Part shown: positions 39,381 through 48,913 of the stretch, one piece after another | Layout: every line of letters begins with the position of its first letter | How positions within the stretch are numbered: position 1 is the stretch's first letter | NCBI GenBank assembly: GCA_020536535.1 | Contig: JAHLWZ010000702.1 | Location: 62,001-126,000 of the forward strand | Length of the DNA: 64,000 nt | Source of the DNA: Pelomyxa schiedti | Taxonomy: Eukaryota > Protista > Evosea | Direction of reading: 5' to 3' | Program-made: the position numbers and the translations under genes | Notes under the pieces: model-generated | The model's input: only the letters and a program-made list of their open reading frames with translations | Told to the model about the DNA's origin: nothing | Database searches by the model: none

Positions 39381-39606
39381 ACCACTCACCGTAGGAGTCA
39401 CTACAACAGCACCACCGCGAGCAATACCGTGATTAGCCGACGGTGATTAGTGCAATTCACCGAATGTGCGGCGATAACGAAAAACACAACCGGAACGCTG
39501 TATTTGATTCAGCAAGAAGTTGATTTCTTGGTCGGTGCCCCAGAACCCTCCTGGTATGTCACACTTGTGTGTGGATGTGTTATCACCAGTTCCATTTCAG
39601 CTGAGC

Positions 39607-42600
39607 CTATGAATCCTCAGACTCATCATCAGACAAGAAAAAGTTCCTTTCCAAACAAAAAAATGGGTCTTGCATTACAAAGCGGCCGAGTGGGGGGCAG
39701 TCCTTGAAAGGTTCTAGATAGACAGGAAGAGTGGGTTGAATTTGAACCAGGCAGCAGTCTCCGGTCTTGATGGCCTTGGGGTTATCCTCGACAACTGTGC
39801 ACTGGTTAGTTGCTTTGTGAAGAAGGAGTAGAAAAATGGGGAATTAAGTACCGGTGCCGGAACGGCGGTCAATTTTTTGAATGAGCCTTACAAACCTTCC
39901 TGCAAAGGAAGCTGTGTGCGCAAAGAAGAACGGGGTGTAGCCTACATGAAGTTGTCCAGGGTGACTGAGAACTATAACCTGAGCTACGAATGAGCCGACA
40001 GAAGGGCCTTGAGGAACTCTGTGAGAATTATGTGTAAAAAGGGTCGGGTTACCAGGATTGATGCACAGAACCATCCCTCTTGATACGTCATTACACGAAA
40101 CGTTTCTCAAGTTCAGACCCAGGTTGTCACCAGCCTGGCATGACTTGAGCTGGCCATGATGAATTTCCATTGAGCCCACAGTAGTTGTAATGCGGCTTGG
40201 CATGAGAGTTACCACATCACCCACTTTTACAGAACCAGATGCCTGACATGGAGAATTGATTGAAAAGGGTTAATGATGAGAGAGATAGAAATAAGCTAGA
40301 TACCACTCTCCCAATTGCCACTGTACCAACTCCTCCAATCTTATTGCACTCCTGGATTGGAATTCTCAGAGAAGAGTCATACATTCTTAGGGGTATGTCG
40401 CATGCATCTATGGCATCCATCAGGGTGTACCCAGTGACTTGTTCCCCGCTAGAAGCAACCCTTGTCCACCCGGCATACCTTTTGCATTCTGTAAGTGACT
40501 TTTATTTAACCTTAAAATTTTTCAAACCAGGGAATTGAAATTTGTTTTTCCGTGAGACCAACACCTTGCCATCCAGAAATTGGAATCACTGCAACTTTGT
40601 TGCCTTGGACACCCATACTTATGTGTGTTAAAGGACAAAGAGTAACTTTGGTGCTTACCTTGTTAAAAGTTTCACCAAATTTTCTTGAACTTCTGTAAAT
40701 CTACTAAACTGGTAGTTGACAGTGTCCATTTTATTCACAACAATGATCTTTCATTAAATTAAAACAAAGAAAATTGGATAGGAGACAGACAAATTGCTTG
40801 ATCCCTTGTGTAATAGCAATCTGTGCTTCCTCTCGGGTCATCCCACCTCGCATAATTCCACTCTCAAACTCGCCTGGAGCAGCGGATACAAGTAATACAG
40901 CAACGTCTGCAAGACTTGAACCAACAGCCATATTTTTGACGAATTGTCTTGTGCCGGGTGCATCAAGGATATCAACCTGGTTTTCCAGATATTATTACTC
41001 GACAGGATAGAAGGGAAAAAACCTCGTATTTAGGTGTAGAAATTCCCCAAATTGCTGTTTCTATGGTGCATGACTGTTCACGCTCTAACGTGTAAGTTAA
41101 ATTACCTTCCCATAGAACATGTTAAACCTGCTCTCAGTTTATCTAAGATCCATGCAAACTTCGATGCAGTCTGTGTAGGGTTACATTACAGAACAATACT
41201 GAGTGCAAGACCTTGCCAATACTTGAGGCAGCGTATTCAATTCTGTCCAATGTTCGCTGGTCAACGTGCCCACATTTGACTACAAGATGGCCAATGGTAG
41301 TACTTTTCCCAGAATCTTTGTCACCAATAAATATAAGGCACAATCGAGGCTTTCCAGTAAATGATCGTGCTTGCTGAGTCATTACCACATGATTCGCTGC
41401 GCTCAAGCGCACTACTTCAGGCTTGGCTGAAACAAAGCGTGCGTAATTGGCATTTCTCCACTCTTTTGCCGCATTGTATTCAGAGAGTTGAGTTTGAGAA
41501 AGGGAATCAACTAGTTTGCTGTCAGCAATTGCACGAACTACATCCCAATCCACTTCATGCAAGCCGTAACAGCTTGATGCAGATCCCCTCCAGGACCACT
41601 GTCCAATTATGGTGCTAAATGCATTCCACGCTTTGCACAAAACTTTTGGATCTTTTGAAGGGTCGACGCTTTCACAGCCAAGGAATTTACCCAACGAAGT
41701 ACTACGTCGGATAGAAATAGAAGAGTCAGAGTTGACCATCAGCGAGGCAAATACAGGTGTTAATGTCTCTTGTTCACATTCTAGCCAAGAAGTGATAACA
41801 TTCTCCCACTTTTGGCAGGAGTTTTGCAGGAGAGCAAGATTGCAGCTTAGGTGTTTCTCAAAAGTTGTTGGGGCTTTGAAGGCGCGATAGGCATCCATAA
41901 TTTCTTGGACAGGATAGGTTGCTGTTGAAAACCACACGTACATCATTCGCATTACATTCTGCCACTGCAAATGTGGTGGCAAAGCAGCTGAAAGCTTGTC
42001 AATAAATATCTTCCGCAAGCAACTAAATACAAGGCTGCAAACTTTAGGATTGGCCAAAAATGCAGTAACTTCAGTCTCTGAAGCATCATTTAACAATGCA
42101 GAAATTTTCTTGGCAGTATTCAAAACTCCTACAGGTATCTGCGCTGTAATATCTGTTGGTGCAGTAGTGGAAGAAGCTGGAGCTCCTTGGTCACCTTGAG
42201 CAAGTTGCTCCACAAGTTCTTTCATGAACTCACGGGTTACGATCTGATTTTTGGCAAGTTGATCCGGCACACGACTGTCGGTTTGATTTGGTTTTTGTAG
42301 TGCCAGTACGAACAACTGCTTCATATATCTTCGCATAGTTTCGGAATTAATCACCTCAAACTTAGATGGCACTGGATGCTTTGTATCAATCAACGTATAT
42401 GCAAATGCTTTTTCGGGCCTATACTTGCCAGGGGAGTCAGCTGTTGGTATAGATTGATTTTTAATCCAGTTAACAAGCATTTCATCAAATTCTTCTTGCT
42501 TGGGCTGTGTGTGTGGGTTTTGAATCCAGACAGCAAGTGAAGATAGAAGTTCAGCTATTCGAGTAACGTCTAGGCCTGTGTGCCTCTCTGCTCTCATGTG

Positions 42601-45600
42601 AAGATTTAGGTAACCAATGTATAGATGCCCAGTGGCTGTAAGAGGTGCCATGGGTGTGCCAGTAATGAATTCACTGCGCCACATAAATACATGGGTGCAA
42701 AATAACAATAATACCTCATAAGACCAGTCATTAAATTTGAGAGCACCATATTTGTCAGTGGCTCTGGGGCTAATGGTAACGCAAAGTTAGCCTTGTGGAA
42801 ACACCCAGGAACAGTGACAGCACTCGCATCTTCCTTCTTTGCTAACCTCCAATACAGCCTAAAGTAATCGAAACTTGTCATGTCAGCCCCTCCAGAAACG
42901 ACATATAGTAGTTCCTTGGCATTGAAAAGTAGGCCAATGGACTGCGAGGGTGCAATAGTATACAAACAAGCAGGAAGTGTATTTCGCTCGCGAATAAGTT
43001 CAACAAAAGTGGCAAAACTGAGGGGGTCAATAAAACGTTTGCAGGCATCCTCTAGATCTACTGTTTTTGGCTACAGGGAAAGTTAGGTATTGGCGGTTGG
43101 GTTTTGAAAGTCTCACATTGCAATGATATTTGCAGAGAATTTTGGGATAACACTCATTGATTGACATATCGGCTTCCAATCTTTCTGAGGTAGGAGGATT
43201 TGCAAGCTCTACAACAACATGAACCCTTACTTGACCCTCGCGGTTATGAGAAACAGTCTCCGTAAAAGAGATTTGTGTTTGAGGATTGCCTAAAAGAGCC
43301 ACTGCTTGTGGCTTGGAGGAGGCCAATTTCGTAATCACTGGGGGAGTAAGAACTTTTCTTTTGTGAACATAAAAAAAAACCTTGCTTTCGTGCTAGAGAA
43401 TGCTCATCCCCTTCAACAACAAAGAGAGAGAGGCGTGTCTCATCACCATTGGGTGTCTCTGCAAGAATGCACACCCTGTTTAACATTTTTCTGGCTCTGG
43501 GGCCTTGCATTGCAACTAGTCTTTGAACTAAAACCAGTGTGACATCTCCATCAAAAAAATAAAAATAAAAATAAAAATAAAAATAAAAATAAAAATAAAA
43601 AAGCTGAGACACACCTTGACGGTCCAGGTTTGTTTGGGATACAAAGCCATGTCCAAGTCTCACTCTCATGGATTCCAAGCCAGCAGATAGAGCTTCTTTA
43701 TCACTTTGTCTAAGAAATAGTTTCTCCGCACGTGAGTTTTAGTGGTTTTTTTTACCTAAATAAACCAGTATTTTGTGCCGCAGTGGCATTAAACTTGTCA
43801 GTGTCTCTAATTTGATACTGCTCAAGTAGGCGCGTAAGACTGTCCATCTGAGATTCCACACTATCAAGTACTTTTTCCAAATACGCCTGTAAAAGGGTTG
43901 AGTAACTTAATTGGAAGACAAAAATATGTTACCTGCAGTATAGTACCTGACCTCACTGCCTTGCTTAAAAGTGCAATACTTTCCACTTGCGTCTTTAGTT
44001 AAATGAGAAATTAAGAAAAAAGATAAGAACTCACAGCGCGAAGTGTTTTTACTTCTGCAGCTTTTTCAGTAAGCAAAGCAGGGGTTATTGTTGCCTTTCC
44101 AAGTTCAGTGATGATTCGTGAAAGTCTTTCCTCCACTCCTATCACTGCTGAAATGGCGCCTTCAACACTCTTGCCAAGTGTGCTCACTTGATAATTTTGC
44201 ATTTCGTAAAGCTTGGACTGCTTTCTTATTGTTATCATTCCTTTTGCAGCCCAGTCGCACAGTGGGTCAGAGAGAACGCCTCTGCAACATAAAGCGCCAT
44301 CACTAAATCCTGCAGGGAAGCTACACTCTACAGCGCCTGAGCCCTTCCCTCCTATTATGGACATGGAGCTTTGTGTGCTACTAGCCTGAGCTCTAAGCTC
44401 ATTTGCGATGTTGGCAACATCTCTAACAGGATGAAAATGGCCTCCAAGAGCTGCCCTTAACCCTTGCAAAAAACTCGCTTGTGCATCCTTCATGTGACAT
44501 ACATGGAAGTCAATGATACACTTTGTATCTCCCATATCAGTTCGAGCTTTTTGTATTGTTTCTATCATCTGCTGTTGGTAACTTGCCAATAGTGAGACCA
44601 ATTAGGTACATGTAATCAAATACCCTGTGAGGCCTTTCGAATCTTTGGCAGTGAAAAATTTGTACCGTGGATGACTTGTATTGGAAGGGATCTGATCTGG
44701 CGCCCCAGATTGCAGATATACAGTTTCTTCACCATCAGTGAGAAACCAGATTACTATACTTGAGGCCTATATTCCAATATGAATAATGGAGAAATTGGCG
44801 GGTCTCACATTTGAGAAAGCTCGGAGTTGAGTTCCTATATCCAGCAGGGCCGCCTCAATATTGGTTCCGCCCTTTGCCTTAAATATATTATCACTCACGA
44901 GATTTTTGATTTCTTCAGTCATTCGCTCCTCTGAAAACAACTCCCCAGATTCCGTGTCCGTGAATTGTGCTAAGAGCACTGTTAAAACCAAGAAAAGAGG
45001 TGTGCCATCATAGAACCTGCCGTAAATTTGATTGCAGTAGAGAGTTTGTAGTTCCAGGGCACAACTGTAACAGACGAACCCCGCCTTACAGCCCCAATGA
45101 CAAGAGGTGGAATTAAATCGCGAGCTACGAAAGAAAGTAATTGAGATGACATCATCTAAAAAAAAAGAGGCAATACCCTTCTTTATACTACTATCAACGT
45201 GGTCTGTAGAGTTTGGAGCACAGTAAAGTCCTTCGCTGTCGTGATTCATGGAAGCACTAATATCCAGGTAGAAAAACACTTGCTCCTCAGTGGTGTTGGC
45301 ACTTGTTTCAGAGCCCTGGGGAATTAGATATGGATAAAAAGGATAAATGCCACACCTCCTCTTCCTCAATATAGCAAAAAACATTGTTTTTCCTCTCCAT
45401 CTGAACTACAAGCATTTGTGCATTTTCACCCCAAAGGTGCAACATCCGTGATCTATTGGAGTCCTTTGAGAATATTAAATTGTTATCACTGGCATTTTAG
45501 GTAAGCAAACCAGTGCAGCCGAACTTGCAGAAGGGATGGTACTTGCTGAGCACAATGATGTAGCGGTGGGCTGCGTGGCACTTCCTTGTACAAAAGGCAG

Positions 45601-46040
45601 AGTGCGAACATATCTTGCAAGTTGTATGAACACATTTTTCTGCTCCGCCGAAAGCAATTCATCAAATACTCTATAAACTGTATCTTTGTGAAGCCATTCT
45701 ACAAGGAGGGAAGCAGTCAATGAAATAGTTTGAAAAAAGGGGGGAGCAACATACCAAGAACATCGCCTACAGAAGACACCCCAAGCTTGCTTATTACAAT
45801 GGCTAAATCGTCCTTGTGCTGAGGCGTGATCAATCCCATTTGCTTTTCCATATCAGCCCTGAGTACAGACAGCAACGTCGTAGCATTTGCCGTCGCCGAT
45901 ATACTCCCATAATTTGCCGAGGCAGTCGTGGCGGGTGCCGCAGTTTCCTGCTGTGCCACAGCCACGTAGTGCTGGAATTCGCTCTCGGTGATTAATCCCG
46001 CGTCGTGCAGCGCTGACAGAGCCTCTCGTGCACTTGACAT
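39607..46040 (-). CDS. large fusion protein: SHOCT-like + vWA + unknown region + eEF1A-like translational GTPase (domains I-III)
   Basis: N-terminal LSALHDAGLITESEF; vWA FYLDISASM / GGTNIEAAL / WFLTDGEE. C-terminal IGDKDSGKSTTIGHL, KFAWILDKLRAEREQSCTI, DAPGTRQFVKNM, VNKMD, PISGWQG, LRIPIQECNKIGGVGTV, VAQVIVLSHPG and PPLGRFVMQD. In-frame continuity was traced through GT-AG introns; the exact 3' end is uncertain. Confidence 0.75.
43555..43596 (+). repeat. (AAAAAT)7 intronic microsatellite
   Basis: Directly visible. It lies in a putative 69-nt intron (43546-43614) and appears as FYFYFY in the ORF track. Confidence 0.9.
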
Positions 46041-46307
46041 CGAGAGTGCTGTTGTGCATATGGTTTTGTTTAGCTGTCATACACCAATCTCACCCGGGTG
46101 GTTGTGTGGTGCGTGGGGAGTGCGTTGAGTTACGGACCTCGTTGAATGAGCTTGGCTTTGGTTGCATTAAAAGTGTCCCCTAGAAAGTCGCGCAAAGAAA
46201 CTAGGGCGTGACCTTGGCGATGAAACGTATCCATGGTTCAAAAATTGACAAACAACAAACGAGAAGAAAAGAATAAAGTCGTGTATTTTATTCCGGGACA
46301 GGATATT

Positions 46308-48913
46308 TCAGTAGTCGTAGTTCTCATTCAGAATCCAAGTCAGCTTGACACCGCATTTGGTGAGAAGGTGTGTGGTAGCACCCATGAAGGCATTTGGGCC
46401 ACAGAGATATACAAGCCGTTCAGAGATTTGAGGGACTTCCCTGTGTGGGGTGAGTAGGGGTAAGATGGACCCAAACACAACAACCTCTGCAAGAATTCTT
46501 CTGTGAGGTGGCCATAGCAAACACCATCCACTCGATAATCAGTGGGACCGTCCCAGAGATTTGTTCTGGTAAGTGCCACAAGAAATTTCCGGATAATCGG
46601 GGTGCCTGATGTAAGGGACTCCCAATCTGTCTTGAACGGGATATCTTGATATTCCCTTTCAACTGCCAAAGATAAGTTGGAGTAAGAGAAAGAAGAAGTA
46701 TACCATGAATCGAGACAATATCAGGAAGCTCGTGTTCTGTTACAATCTTCTCAGAGAAGGTATTTCGTAGTCCCCGTAGCATACTTATGACAGGTGTAAC
46801 TCCTGAACCTGCTGTGATCATTAAGACCCTCCACCAGTTTGAAAAAGGATAGGTCGGTGCTCTGTTTCCAAGCTTGCAGAAGTTAGTTGAAATTTAAGAT
46901 TTGAAGTGCTCCAACTACCTGAATGTAGAAAGAAACTGGGAGAGTAAATCCTCCTTCGATCCCTTGCATCACACCTGATGTCTCACCGATAATTGCAGTA
47001 TCGTGAAGCCAACCAGTCACTTTCCCTTGCCTCTTAACGGAAATTTCAATTTCATATCTGTCTCTGCGCGTTTTACTGGTAGCGCTCTCTTCAATTGTCG
47101 GTACAGTAGCAAACGCCGCAGTGGAAATAGACCAACAACGTAGGTACTCTTCACCTCCAATGTCAAATCTGAATGTTGAATATTGCCCTGGTTCCCACCT
47201 GACGCTCCTACTGGTTCGCCAAATAAACGTAGTCACGTTCGCAGATTCTTTACGTCGCCCTACAAGTTGCATTGCCACATCCCAGGAAGTGCCCAAATTC
47301 TTCCATTGGGCAGCTGCAGAATGCCACTTTGGGAGTGCAAAGTCTGGTTGAAGGAGGATTACACTGTTGGCGGGAATATCAAAGAGGGGTGGATGGTGAG
47401 TCGAGAACGACAAGAACTTCCAATGAAAAGGACTTGCACATGCTGTGAGACGCCAACGTGTCGCTAGGAAAGTAGTGAATGCATTGTTCAGAATCAGGAA
47501 ACAAACATACGTGTGAAAACGCATAACCTATCACAGTTGTCAAGGGACTGGTGCGGTGGGAGCCAATGTACATCCAAAACGCCAGTAAATTGAAGGGTGT
47601 GTCCTCTCTCGAAATCGAGAAAGGTTATCCCAGCATGGTGGTCAATGAGTGTATTCCCTAATACCTGACACAGTCAGGTTGGCAGATAGGCGTCAGGTAC
47701 CTGGAACATTCCTTTTCCATGGTAATCGCCCCACGCAAGTTTATGCCCATCGATTATACGCACGAATCCTGGTCTGGAGAGGTTTAGCTGCGAAATATGG
47801 AAGATGGCATGCCTTCCCCCACGGTGGGATGTATCTACACCGCGAACAAGCTCAGGGTTGGCAGTGGATATAAAGAAAGTGTCACTACTGGTAATAAAGT
47901 TGATGTAGCTGTTTGGTAATTTGTGGCCATCAGACAAGGTAGTATCATCCAGGCAACTTGGTGTGCATTTCCTCACTGAATCAATTGTGCGGGATTGAAT
48001 ATAACGTGGACAAATCGAGAAAGCTTCCATAACAGTTACAGAAAAGCCATTCCTTTTTTTTTTAGTGAGTTTCGCTACTATAAAGAGTCTCCTACGAAGA
48101 GACGGGGTCACAGACAACGCCAGCTATTCTGTATCGCTTACGCGTTTCAAACTCTAAAAACGTGAGACTGATAGGCGTGCCACTGTTGGCCCCAACTTTC
48201 CATAGAGGATCCCCAACCGGTGGCGGCTTAAGCACACGAACAAGGCAAGGTTTCTCAACGCAAACAAGTTGCCTGTATGCGTTAGATTGGAACACTCTAG
48301 CCATTCTTGCACTGTCTGGATATACACCACAAGCGTCGCAGAAGTGTGCAGAAGAAGCGATGCTGCTTGTAGTTGGGGGATAATCTTCCTGGCTCTCACT
48401 TGAAGGGGTAGGAGGCGGAACTGCAGATAGGCTCCCAACTACACATGGTTCATCCCCAAAGGAATCTTCAGAAAGTGGAGTTGCATCAGGATGTTCAGAG
48501 AGCCCCTGCAAAACCTCACTGGAACAAGGGATCAAATCTGTGGGATCGGCATATATCGGAGTAAGCCACACCTAGGAGTTAGGTCTAAAAAAAGGACCCA
48601 AAAGGAAATAGGAAAATCACCTCGCCTGTTTCCACATCGCGGTAACCCACGTAAATGGCATGCCTTGTTGACAAAAAATTGATCGAGTCAGGGTGCACTT
48701 CTGTAGCAACCTGCGGTAATTTACGTGTTCAAAATCCTCGCAAAGTGAACATCCGGTGCAAGAGCCGCAGTAACAGTAAAATCGGACCTTGTGTTCTCCC
48801 AGAGATTGAGCACGGTCCCTCATATTGTCACGTTGTTGCATCTCCTTCTCACCACGATTGAATATGTCACTTCGCCAGTCTGAGATCCATGGTGCCGTTG
48901 TGGTTTGTTGCAT
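46308..48913 (-). CDS. pyridoxamine-5'-phosphate-oxidase-like split barrels fused to an FNR-type FAD/NAD(P)-binding oxidoreductase
   Basis: FNRGEKEMQQR, SLTFLEFETRKRYRIAG, DTFFIST...GVDTSHRGG, WGDYHGKGMFQ-GNTL, WEPGQY...RCWSIS, ITAGSGVTPVISML and VYLCGPNAFM...ENYDY*. Confidence 0.85.

Follow-up and report, generated by a model that had tools for sequence, protein, structure and literature searches.

A conserved family of giant proteins that join a vWA domain to an eEF1A-like module, and its probably hydrolysis-deficient member in Pelomyxa schiedti

On the minus strand of a 64,000-nucleotide stretch of the Pelomyxa schiedti genome (assembly GCA_020536535.1, contig JAHLWZ010000702.1, positions 62,001 to 126,000; hereafter the window, to which all coordinates refer) lies a gene for a giant protein in which a vWA domain with a complete metal ion-dependent adhesion site (MIDAS) and a long middle region are followed by a C-terminal module resembling the translation elongation factor eEF1A. 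An earlier note, made from the sequence of the window, had singled out this fusion and had read it as a repurposed, possibly GTP-locked eEF1A copy, acting either as a decoy or sensor or as a binding module coupled to a vWA scaffold. Our analysis confirms the observation and partly supports this first interpretation. The locus is one intact, spliced gene and not a pair of neighboring genes, and its product belongs to a conserved family of giant proteins present across Amoebozoa and in some unidentified protists. The copy in the window is probably a GTP-binding, hydrolysis-deficient derivative that would stand to its relatives as Ski7 stands to Hbs1.

Results

One spliced gene encodes the fusion protein

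The public model of the fusion gene (39509..46234, minus strand) consists of 26 exons with 1,827 codons in total, separated by 25 GT-AG introns of 40-89 nucleotides; only its part below position 39667 is doubtful, as described further below. Its reading frame is open across all exons, and exon-by-exon mapping showed that the translation of the 26-exon chain is an exact match to the 1,827-residue public protein P0001, so that the exons can indeed be joined in frame into one fusion as the earlier note had proposed. A homology search that took the unassigned stretch of the large exon as its query returned the same protein, publicly named "translation elongation factor 1a [Pelomyxa schiedti]", at 100% identity. 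Independent manual splicing of the EF1A part yielded exons that agree with the public model, and Pfam matches EF-Tu/eEF1A domains in several separate open-frame pieces of the region. The exon of about 1.5 kb that had been described as running from the unknown region into the G1 motif of the GTPase domain is exon 16 (42673-41212; 1,462 nucleotides), and it is unbroken. The start of the gene had been placed at 46040, where MSSAREALSALHDAGLITESEF begins on the minus strand; it had to be corrected to position 46234, upstream of this ATG codon, and the first exon that is thereby added is conserved with the N-termini of the relatives.

RNA for the locus was available only as contigs from two single-cell libraries (runs X1 and X2). 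These contigs form three islands (39700-40212, 41391-41596 and 41699-43178), none of which reaches from the vWA to the EF1A part. They contain three spliced joints on the strand of the gene, corresponding to introns 15 (42674-42714), 23 (40008-40052) and 24 (39795-39851); the latter two, joined in one RNA contig, lie within domains II and III of the EF1A module. Intron 15 is spliced in run X2 and kept, together with intron 14 (43071-43116), in contigs of run X1, a finding that points to unspliced RNA or DNA beside the mature mRNA in the single-cell libraries. Trinity assemblies of Mastigella, Soliformovum, Cavostelium and Pyxidicula contain full-length transcripts of this architecture, and genome models of Balamuthia show it as well. 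Since the sequences from the first four are open reading frames of de novo assembled transcriptomes, each of them represents a single mRNA. We consider the Pelomyxa locus to be one gene because a single exon spans the junction and because full-length transcripts of the same architecture are found in four other amoebozoan species.

Full-length relatives occur across Amoebozoa

A profile search and cluster look-ups recovered about 20 full-length relatives of 1,500-2,160 residues, all combining the vWA domain, the same middle region and the C-terminal eEF1A-like module. Among them are a second Pelomyxa paralogue (P0007), two paralogues of Mastigella eilhardi and sequences of Soliformovum irregulare, Cavostelium apophysatum and Pyxidicula operculata (all from these three genera and from Mastigella being transcriptome open reading frames), two near-identical Balamuthia mandrillaris entries that are annotated as eRF3, an MMETSP transcript, and several metagenomic or unidentified sequences. 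The search for the architecture and for paralogues that the earlier note had suggested thus shows that the fusion is not special to this genome. All long homologues of the middle region have C-terminal GTP_EFTU domains as well, and when the profile of the middle region was run against 5.8 billion clustered proteins, only family members and fragments were returned. The extension N-terminal to the module measures about 1,000-1,700 residues in the family and about 1,370 in the Pelomyxa copy, and the alignments contain many invariant columns along its whole length. Each species has one or two copies, with orthology across Amoebozoa. The paralogue pairs of the archamoebae Pelomyxa and Mastigella group together (support 94/94), which indicates that a duplication into copies A and B preceded the split of these two genera.

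Some relatives carry an additional domain, a 2H phosphoesterase, with matches to PF13563 (up to 7e-28) and to TIGR02258, the family of RNA 2',3'-cyclic phosphodiesterases (1.9e-7). In one clade (P0016, P0020, P0021) it is located near the N-terminus, in front of the vWA domain, and in P0205 and P0186 it is inserted between the middle region and the G domain; these two architectural positions suggest independent or shuffled acquisitions. The repeated fusion with such a domain suggests a link with RNA ends. In Pfam searches for the 2H phosphoesterase (PF13563/LigT), neither the protein encoded in the window nor any of the identified amoebozoan members had a match.

In two intron-poor relatives (L001, 3001-8742; L003, 3001-8686) the EF1A module was called as a separate downstream gene of 414 and 156 residues, respectively. 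A short intron or a frameshift is the probable cause, and public protein sets therefore under-count the full-length members.

The proteins of this family are already public under generic or wrong names, while the architecture itself is unstudied. The statement in the earlier note that no characterized protein of this architecture was known agrees with our full-text literature searches, in which no description of a vWA–eEF1A family was found. A survey of translational GTPases from 2015 (PMC4342817) mentions no such subfamily, nor is the family mentioned in a paper on the EF1 family of giant viruses (PMC6582330).

The C-terminal module derives from eEF1A and has lost the catalytic His

The G domain (residues 1372-1610; 40376..41355, minus strand) is matched by Pfam GTP_EFTU (PF00009; 1.4e-37), and domains II and III, up to the sequence ..PPLGRFVMQD (residues 1611-1792; 39667..40375, minus strand), by GTP_EFTU_D2 (PF03144; 1.7e-16) and GTP-eEF1A_C (PF22594; 2.6e-23). 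All three matches exceed the gathering scores. Of the complete three-domain module described in the earlier note, the G domain and domains II and III are therefore recognized by Pfam, and it is the last strand of domain III that is doubtful.

In a comparison with families represented in the PDB, the module scored highest with eEF1A (442 bits, to yeast eEF1A), followed by archaeal aEF1A (356 bits), eRF3 (227 bits) and Hbs1 (220 bits), and the module of an orthologue gave the same order. We therefore rejected membership in the Hbs1/eRF3/Ski7 group. Identity to canonical eEF1A is about 47-51%; a canonical eEF1A orthologue is expected to reach about 75% or more. In a maximum-likelihood tree, which is unrooted and was built without archaeal, Hbs1 and eRF3 outgroups, the canonical eEF1As are grouped together with 100/100 support and without any fusion module among them, and the terminal branches of the fusion modules are long (0.6-3.0, vs. 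0.03-0.15 for canonical eEF1A); the branch of the copy studied here measures 0.83, vs. 0.63 for its Mastigella orthologue. The position outside the canonical group and the identity of 46.6% likewise exclude a canonical eEF1A orthologue, and for the same reasons it is misleading that public entries carry the names "elongation factor 1a" and "eRF3". The phylogenetic check on eEF1A, HBS1 and eRF3 proposed in the earlier note has in this way been answered in part: the bit scores place the module nearest to eEF1A, and the tree covers eEF1A and the fusion modules.

All nucleotide-binding motifs can be located on the minus strand: G1 (GDKDSGKS) at 41302-41325, switch I (EQSCTI) at 41062-41079, G3 (DAPGT) at 40950-40964, G4 (NKMD) at 40724-40735 and G5 (SGW) at 40569-40577. 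G1, G4 and G5 are thus present, as is the Thr of switch I (QSCTI). The NKxD motif is kept in all 16 complete modules of the family, and G5 in most members. The alterations of the GTPase motifs reported in the earlier note differ in weight. In 13 of 17 family members, D, N, A, E or S stands in place of the His of the canonical G1 sequence GHVDSGKS; two relatives and two canonical-like cases keep this His, and its change in the Pelomyxa copy is for this reason uninformative. The changes from His to Thr in G3 and from Gly to Ser in switch I are real and stand out. The G3 His is invariant in canonical eEF1A, kept in eight of eight close relatives and in 14 of 16 family modules, and lost only in this copy (Thr) and in the MMETSP sequence (Asp), so that its loss is a peculiarity of this copy. 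The switch I Gly is also invariant in canonical eEF1A and in eight of eight close relatives, and is Ser here.

We compared these changes with the background of substitutions at 107 positions that eight canonical eEF1As have in common and that at least seven of eight close relatives retain (yeast-like numbering). The Pelomyxa copy changes eight of the 107 positions and its relatives change 4-11, which shows that the module is not decaying and argues against the decay of the locus that the earlier note had considered as a refutation. G70S in switch I and H95T in G3 are among the eight and are both unique to this copy when compared with the close relatives. Four others (R425Q, T430C, V433T and G434H) concern the region of the last strand; R425Q lies inside the homologous part, and the remaining three fall in the doubtful 3' end.

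The role of the G3 His in EF-Tu and eEF1A is to position the hydrolytic water. With the P-loop Lys and Ser, the switch I Thr, NKMD and SGW retained, and with Thr in place of the G3 His and Ser in place of the switch I Gly, the Pelomyxa module is predicted to bind GTP and to hydrolyze it very poorly on the ribosome. A precedent is Ski7, in which the G3 His is replaced by Ser and which binds GTP but shows no hydrolysis, even when ribosomes are present (PMC4933942).

The N-terminal part contains a MIDAS-type vWA domain

The first exon encodes a helix motif (residues 8-32, GHALVSLRDFLG..KAKLIQR; 46139..46213, minus strand) that aligns with the N-termini of P0016, P0020, P0021 and P0056 and is visible also in P0178, P0180, P0181, P0182, P0184 and P0185. 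It is followed by a helix with a resemblance, and no more, to SHOCT (residues 40-58; 45972..46028, minus strand). The earlier note had called the N-terminus SHOCT-like; the match to Pfam SHOCT (PF09851; E 1.7e-4) reaches 21.7 bits, below the cut-off of 27, and is confined to this protein, with none in the N-termini of ten relatives, and we have rejected the assignment.

The vWA domain (residues 238-480; 44380..45291, minus strand) is encoded by exons 5-9 and has a complete MIDAS (D247, S249, S251, T347 and D376) formed by the motifs DISAS (45250-45264), GGTNIE (44854-44871) and TDGEE (44725-44739), all on the minus strand. Its Pfam match lies below the gathering score (VWA_2, E 0.11, 13.5 bits; best value in the family 21.9 bits, cut-off 27). 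The fold is supported by structure: an AlphaFold2 model (residues 14-256, with a predicted local distance difference test score [pLDDT] of 80-90) aligned to many vWA structures with VIA-align Z scores of 13-17.3, and Foldseek gave a probability of 1.0. As in ArnB or Sec23/24, the vWA domain is followed by beta strands. Across 18 relatives, the alignment columns of the MIDAS ligands show either no variation or a conservation of at least 90%. Together with the structural Z score of 17, this bears out the intact vWA MIDAS (DISAS/GGT/TDG) that the earlier note had seen.

The middle region contains family-specific domains

Between the vWA domain and the module lie about 900 residues of unknown fold. 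They begin with long, coiled-coil-like helices (residues about 550-654; 43770..44172, minus strand; helices 326-430 of AlphaFold2 model m74264242cff9, pLDDT 65-83), which are followed by a compact alpha/beta domain (residues 706-826; 43032..43483, minus strand; residues 50-170 of model m58dc2b403354, pLDDT about 90). The next segment (residues 828-945; 42634..43028, minus strand), within which intron 15 falls, is the most conserved one of the family and has many invariant columns (DPLSF..TLPA.LY..GLLF.AKE..TSF.YFRL..VPG.F..AN.ALP.AP.PL..ITGTPMAPL). Its pLDDT is 26-45 in both models, and no confident fold was obtained. Directly upstream of G1, and in the same exon, a family-specific helical domain with a four-stranded sheet (residues 946-1346; 41431..42633, minus strand) is modeled with a pLDDT of 85-96; it is covered by RNA contigs at 41391-41596 and 41699-42673. 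The modeling of the middle region that the earlier note had recommended has thus yielded two confident domains (706-826 and 946-1346) without a convincing structural match.

For residues 657-1372, neither Foldseek (PDB and AlphaFold DB clusters) nor a shape search of the ESM Atlas gave a match, and a re-examination of Foldseek's matches with VIA produced nothing convincing for the middle region. Pfam at lenient thresholds, NCBIfam, PADLOC and a search of the family profile against PDB sequences detected no domain in the extension. AlphaFold DB multi-domain alignments to unnamed vWA proteins were not considered homology (template modeling score 0.12-0.23, root mean square deviation >20 Å). The best structural matches of the alpha/beta domain had Z scores of only about 3; among other small alpha/beta folds, the N-terminal domains of the ribosome hibernation factors pY/HPF recurred with Z 3.0-3.2. 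As these values are too weak, we set this identity aside.

The 3' end of the gene in the window is doubtful

Homology to the relatives (tblastn) ends at ..PPLGRFVMQD, whose D codon occupies positions 39669-39667. The remaining part of the model (39509..39666, minus strand) encodes PFF and the first base of a Cys codon, followed by intron 25 and the last exon (SAEMELVITHPH..), and has no homology to the relatives. In the graph of DNA contigs from runs X3 and X4, a branch point is present at 39667-39696. The branch that continues into the window comprises 59 nucleotides (depth 9 in X3 and 24 in X4), the alternative contig 1,762 nucleotides (depth 11 in X3 and 57 in X4). In frame, the first 30 letters of the alternative contig read GHLTIGVGIV, the conserved last strand of domain III (as read from the 30-letter consensus), so that this branch gives ..QDGHLTIGVGIV..; the counterpart in Mastigella is QDGHMTVAVGVV. 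These 30 letters are absent from the window, and the missing strand was not found downstream within it. Because homology stops and the DNA contigs branch at 39667, the end of the gene at 39607 given by the earlier note is unreliable. Below 39667 the window may have been joined wrongly, as can plausibly happen with amplified single-cell DNA, or there may be two alleles, one of which has a broken C-terminus.

Most family members (P0178-P0185, P0007, P0016 and P0021) end in a short basic/aromatic tail (e.g., SKYFR, KSRYLK, KHWGNKKHR or KGKHFK). This tail, which may be a conserved terminal motif, is missing from the C-terminus predicted in the window.

Other features of the locus

Intron 12 (43528-43614), with 87 nucleotides one of the two longest introns of the fusion gene, contains a dinucleotide-type microsatellite that reads FYFYFY/FIFIFI when translated. 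The upstream neighbor on the minus strand (46300-47524) is an FAD/NAD-binding oxidoreductase-like gene with motifs such as GSGVTPVISMLR. It stops only about 100-200 nucleotides before the start of the fusion gene, and the intergenic spacing is therefore very tight.

Discussion

On a modest balance of probability, we favor the view that the family is a conserved, eEF1A-derived fusion directed at the ribosome or at tRNA and built on a MIDAS-vWA scaffold, and that the Pelomyxa copy is a non-hydrolyzing adaptor. By analogy with eRF3, Hbs1, Ski7 and GTPBP1/2, the eEF1A-like module would most likely dock at the ribosomal A site or GTPase center, or would bind a tRNA or a tRNA-like partner. The extension with its MIDAS-vWA domain could recruit or scaffold further factors at this site, in the service of translation surveillance or RNA-end processing. 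The Pelomyxa copy would bind GTP, would barely hydrolyze it and would stay bound, as does Ski7, the non-hydrolyzing descendant of Hbs1.

Several observations weigh against this view. The 3' end of the fusion gene is abnormal in the window, and RNA at the locus is patchy, with some contigs unspliced. The structural searches left about 700 residues of the extension without a match that could hint at an activity. GTP binding and the loss of hydrolysis are predicted from motifs only, and the proposed role at the ribosome or on tRNA derives entirely from the homology of the module and from analogy. Of the positions that do not vary in canonical eEF1A, the family fails to keep about 60%, and the binding of partners may therefore have changed.

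Other explanations deserve consideration. That the gene is an artefact or is dying, either because the predictor joined two neighbors or because an eEF1A paralogue has become a pseudogene, is hardly credible. The abnormal 3' end with its DNA contigs branching at 39667, the RNA contigs with retained introns and the missing catalytic His would fit such an origin; yet the frame is open over 26 exons, the junction lies inside one exon, three joints are spliced in RNA, the architecture is kept in about 20 relatives, and the conserved positions are retained at the same rate as in these. Rather more probable than an artefact, though still improbable, is an integrated decoy or sensor, in which the eEF1A copy would bait pathogen effectors that modify eEF1A and the vWA scaffold would signal the modification. 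Domains of the vWA type occur in conflict systems, the fusion modules evolve much faster than canonical eEF1A (branches of 0.6-3.0 vs. 0.03-0.15), catalysis is predicted to be lost in the Pelomyxa copy, and several relatives retain the loop GK.SFK[YF]AW, which presumably contains the serine that is glucosylated by the Legionella Lgt effectors. However, Pfam detected no NTPase switch and no death-like, TIR or other signaling or effector domain, PADLOC found nothing, and each species has only one or two copies, orthologous across Amoebozoa, instead of a lineage-specific expansion; moreover, 14 of 16 members keep a catalytically competent set of motifs, which is unexpected for a bait.

The fused 2H phosphoesterases raise the question of whether the protein is an enzyme of tRNA or RNA end repair, whose module would hold the acceptor end of a tRNA or another RNA while the extension acts on 2',3'-cyclic phosphate or 2'-5' ends, by means of the 2H domain in one clade and perhaps of segment 828-945 elsewhere. 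The presence of this domain at two different positions in relatives, the HxT motifs visible in P0205 and a conservation of segment 828-945 as strong as that of an active site lend this proposal some appeal, whereas the lack of a 2H domain in the Pelomyxa protein and in all identified amoebozoan members, and the failure to find a known catalytic fold or motif in the extension, speak against it. We judge it unlikely, though distinctly less so than a decoy; it overlaps with the ribosome- or tRNA-directed adaptor that we favor and does not exclude it. A further proposal, a ribosome-associated factor resembling a ubiquitin ligase, whose helical domain would be related to the UBR4 E3 module and would recruit an E2, stems from a single structural outlier. 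The UBR4 E3 module with UBE2A (8btl_A) aligned over 238 residues with Z 9.6, the next match, which was yeast Ubr1 at rank 2, had only Z 4.0, and a protein-language-model search with residues 932-1370 returned E2-type families as its only named matches (scores 0.60-0.64). According to the note that accompanies VIA-align, Z scores below about 13 are unreliable for helical folds, and Foldseek found nothing. A hemiRING zinc finger is the defining feature of the UBR4 module (PMC10873205); in the fusion family, the aligned range contains no conserved Cys and a single invariant His (H957). The E2 signal did not recur when a subregion of an orthologue was searched, and Pfam gave no match up to E 10 in ten relatives. 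We rejected an E2/UBC fold on these last grounds together with the missing Cys, and regard the ligase-like factor as very unlikely, less probable even than a decoy. A more ambitious picture can be drawn from several of these elements. In it, the family would be a translation-linked surveillance or defense machine whose GTPase reads the state of the ribosome or tRNA and whose MIDAS-vWA scaffold and family-specific domains couple this reading to an effector; one domain might resemble an E3 module, the hyper-conserved segment of about 120 residues might be a new active site or docking element, the effector of the sister clade would be the RNA 2',3'-cyclic phosphodiesterase, and the Pelomyxa copy would be GTP-locked. 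Taken as a whole, we consider this picture speculative and give it no better prospects than the repair enzyme.

If the ribosome- or tRNA-directed fusion that we favor is correct, a further branch has to be added to the EF1 family, one that derives directly from eEF1A. The family is conserved over major amoebozoan lineages, including the human pathogen Balamuthia, and its extension of 1,000-1,700 residues combines a metal-dependent adhesion domain with folds that match nothing solved. It would then mark a translation-linked process that model organisms lack and that has been hidden behind the public names already mentioned. As some of its members are catalytically intact and the catalytic His has been lost twice independently, the family also offers a natural experiment parallel to the transition from Hbs1 to Ski7. 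Should the module have been repurposed away from the ribosome, it would be equally informative on how translation factors are recruited to new roles.

Comparison with known systems

With MIDAS-type vWA proteins in which a beta-sandwich follows the vWA domain (the ArnB and Sec23/24 core, TFIIH p44, Rpn10, ITIH and pilus adhesins), the N-terminal part shares the fold (Z 15-17) and the DxSxS, T and D metal ligands; in contrast, the likeness in sequence is sub-threshold (VWA_2, E 0.11 in the Pelomyxa protein and down to 2.7e-4 in a paralogue), and no translation factor is attached to any of these proteins. The likeness to the UBR4 E3 module (hemiRING and UZI) is limited to the one outlier match, covering residues of about 876-1291, and serves as a lead only; the fusion family differs from it in having no conserved zinc ligands, and neither sequence nor Foldseek supports the relation.

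The module shares all Pfam domains with canonical eEF1A, and G4, G5, the core of the P-loop and the domain II motif GG.GTV..GRV are kept. It differs in lying outside the canonical group, in evolving 5-20 times faster and in family-specific substitutions at sites that are invariant in canonical eEF1A (e.g., T88D, H136E and Q132M). Canonical eEF1A, for its part, has no giant N-terminal extension and keeps the catalytic His that is lost in the Pelomyxa copy.

The routes by which translation termination, ribosome rescue and mRNA surveillance are known to proceed are defined by eRF3, Hbs1, Ski7 and GTPBP1/2, EF1-family GTPases with N-terminal adaptors. The same three-domain module is found in eRF3, Hbs1 and GTPBP1/2, whose N-terminal extensions connect the ribosomal A site to other machinery (PMC4342817). 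They are not orthologous to the fusion proteins, whose sequence is nearest to eEF1A, and none of them has a vWA domain or the middle region described here. In Ski7, the yeast paralogue of Hbs1, the EF1-family module of G domain and domains II and III is likewise C-terminal and the N-terminal region is the adaptor; the catalytic His of G3 is replaced (by Ser in Ski7 and by Thr in the Pelomyxa copy), and the protein arose by duplication of a catalytically intact paralogue, to which the archamoebal duplication into copies A and B corresponds. The two systems differ in that the Pelomyxa module comes from eEF1A and not from Hbs1/eRF3 (442 vs. about 220 bits), in that most members of the fusion family keep the His, and in that a short exosome- or Ski-binding region in Ski7 contrasts with an extension of about 1,370 residues that combines a MIDAS-vWA domain with folded, family-specific domains.

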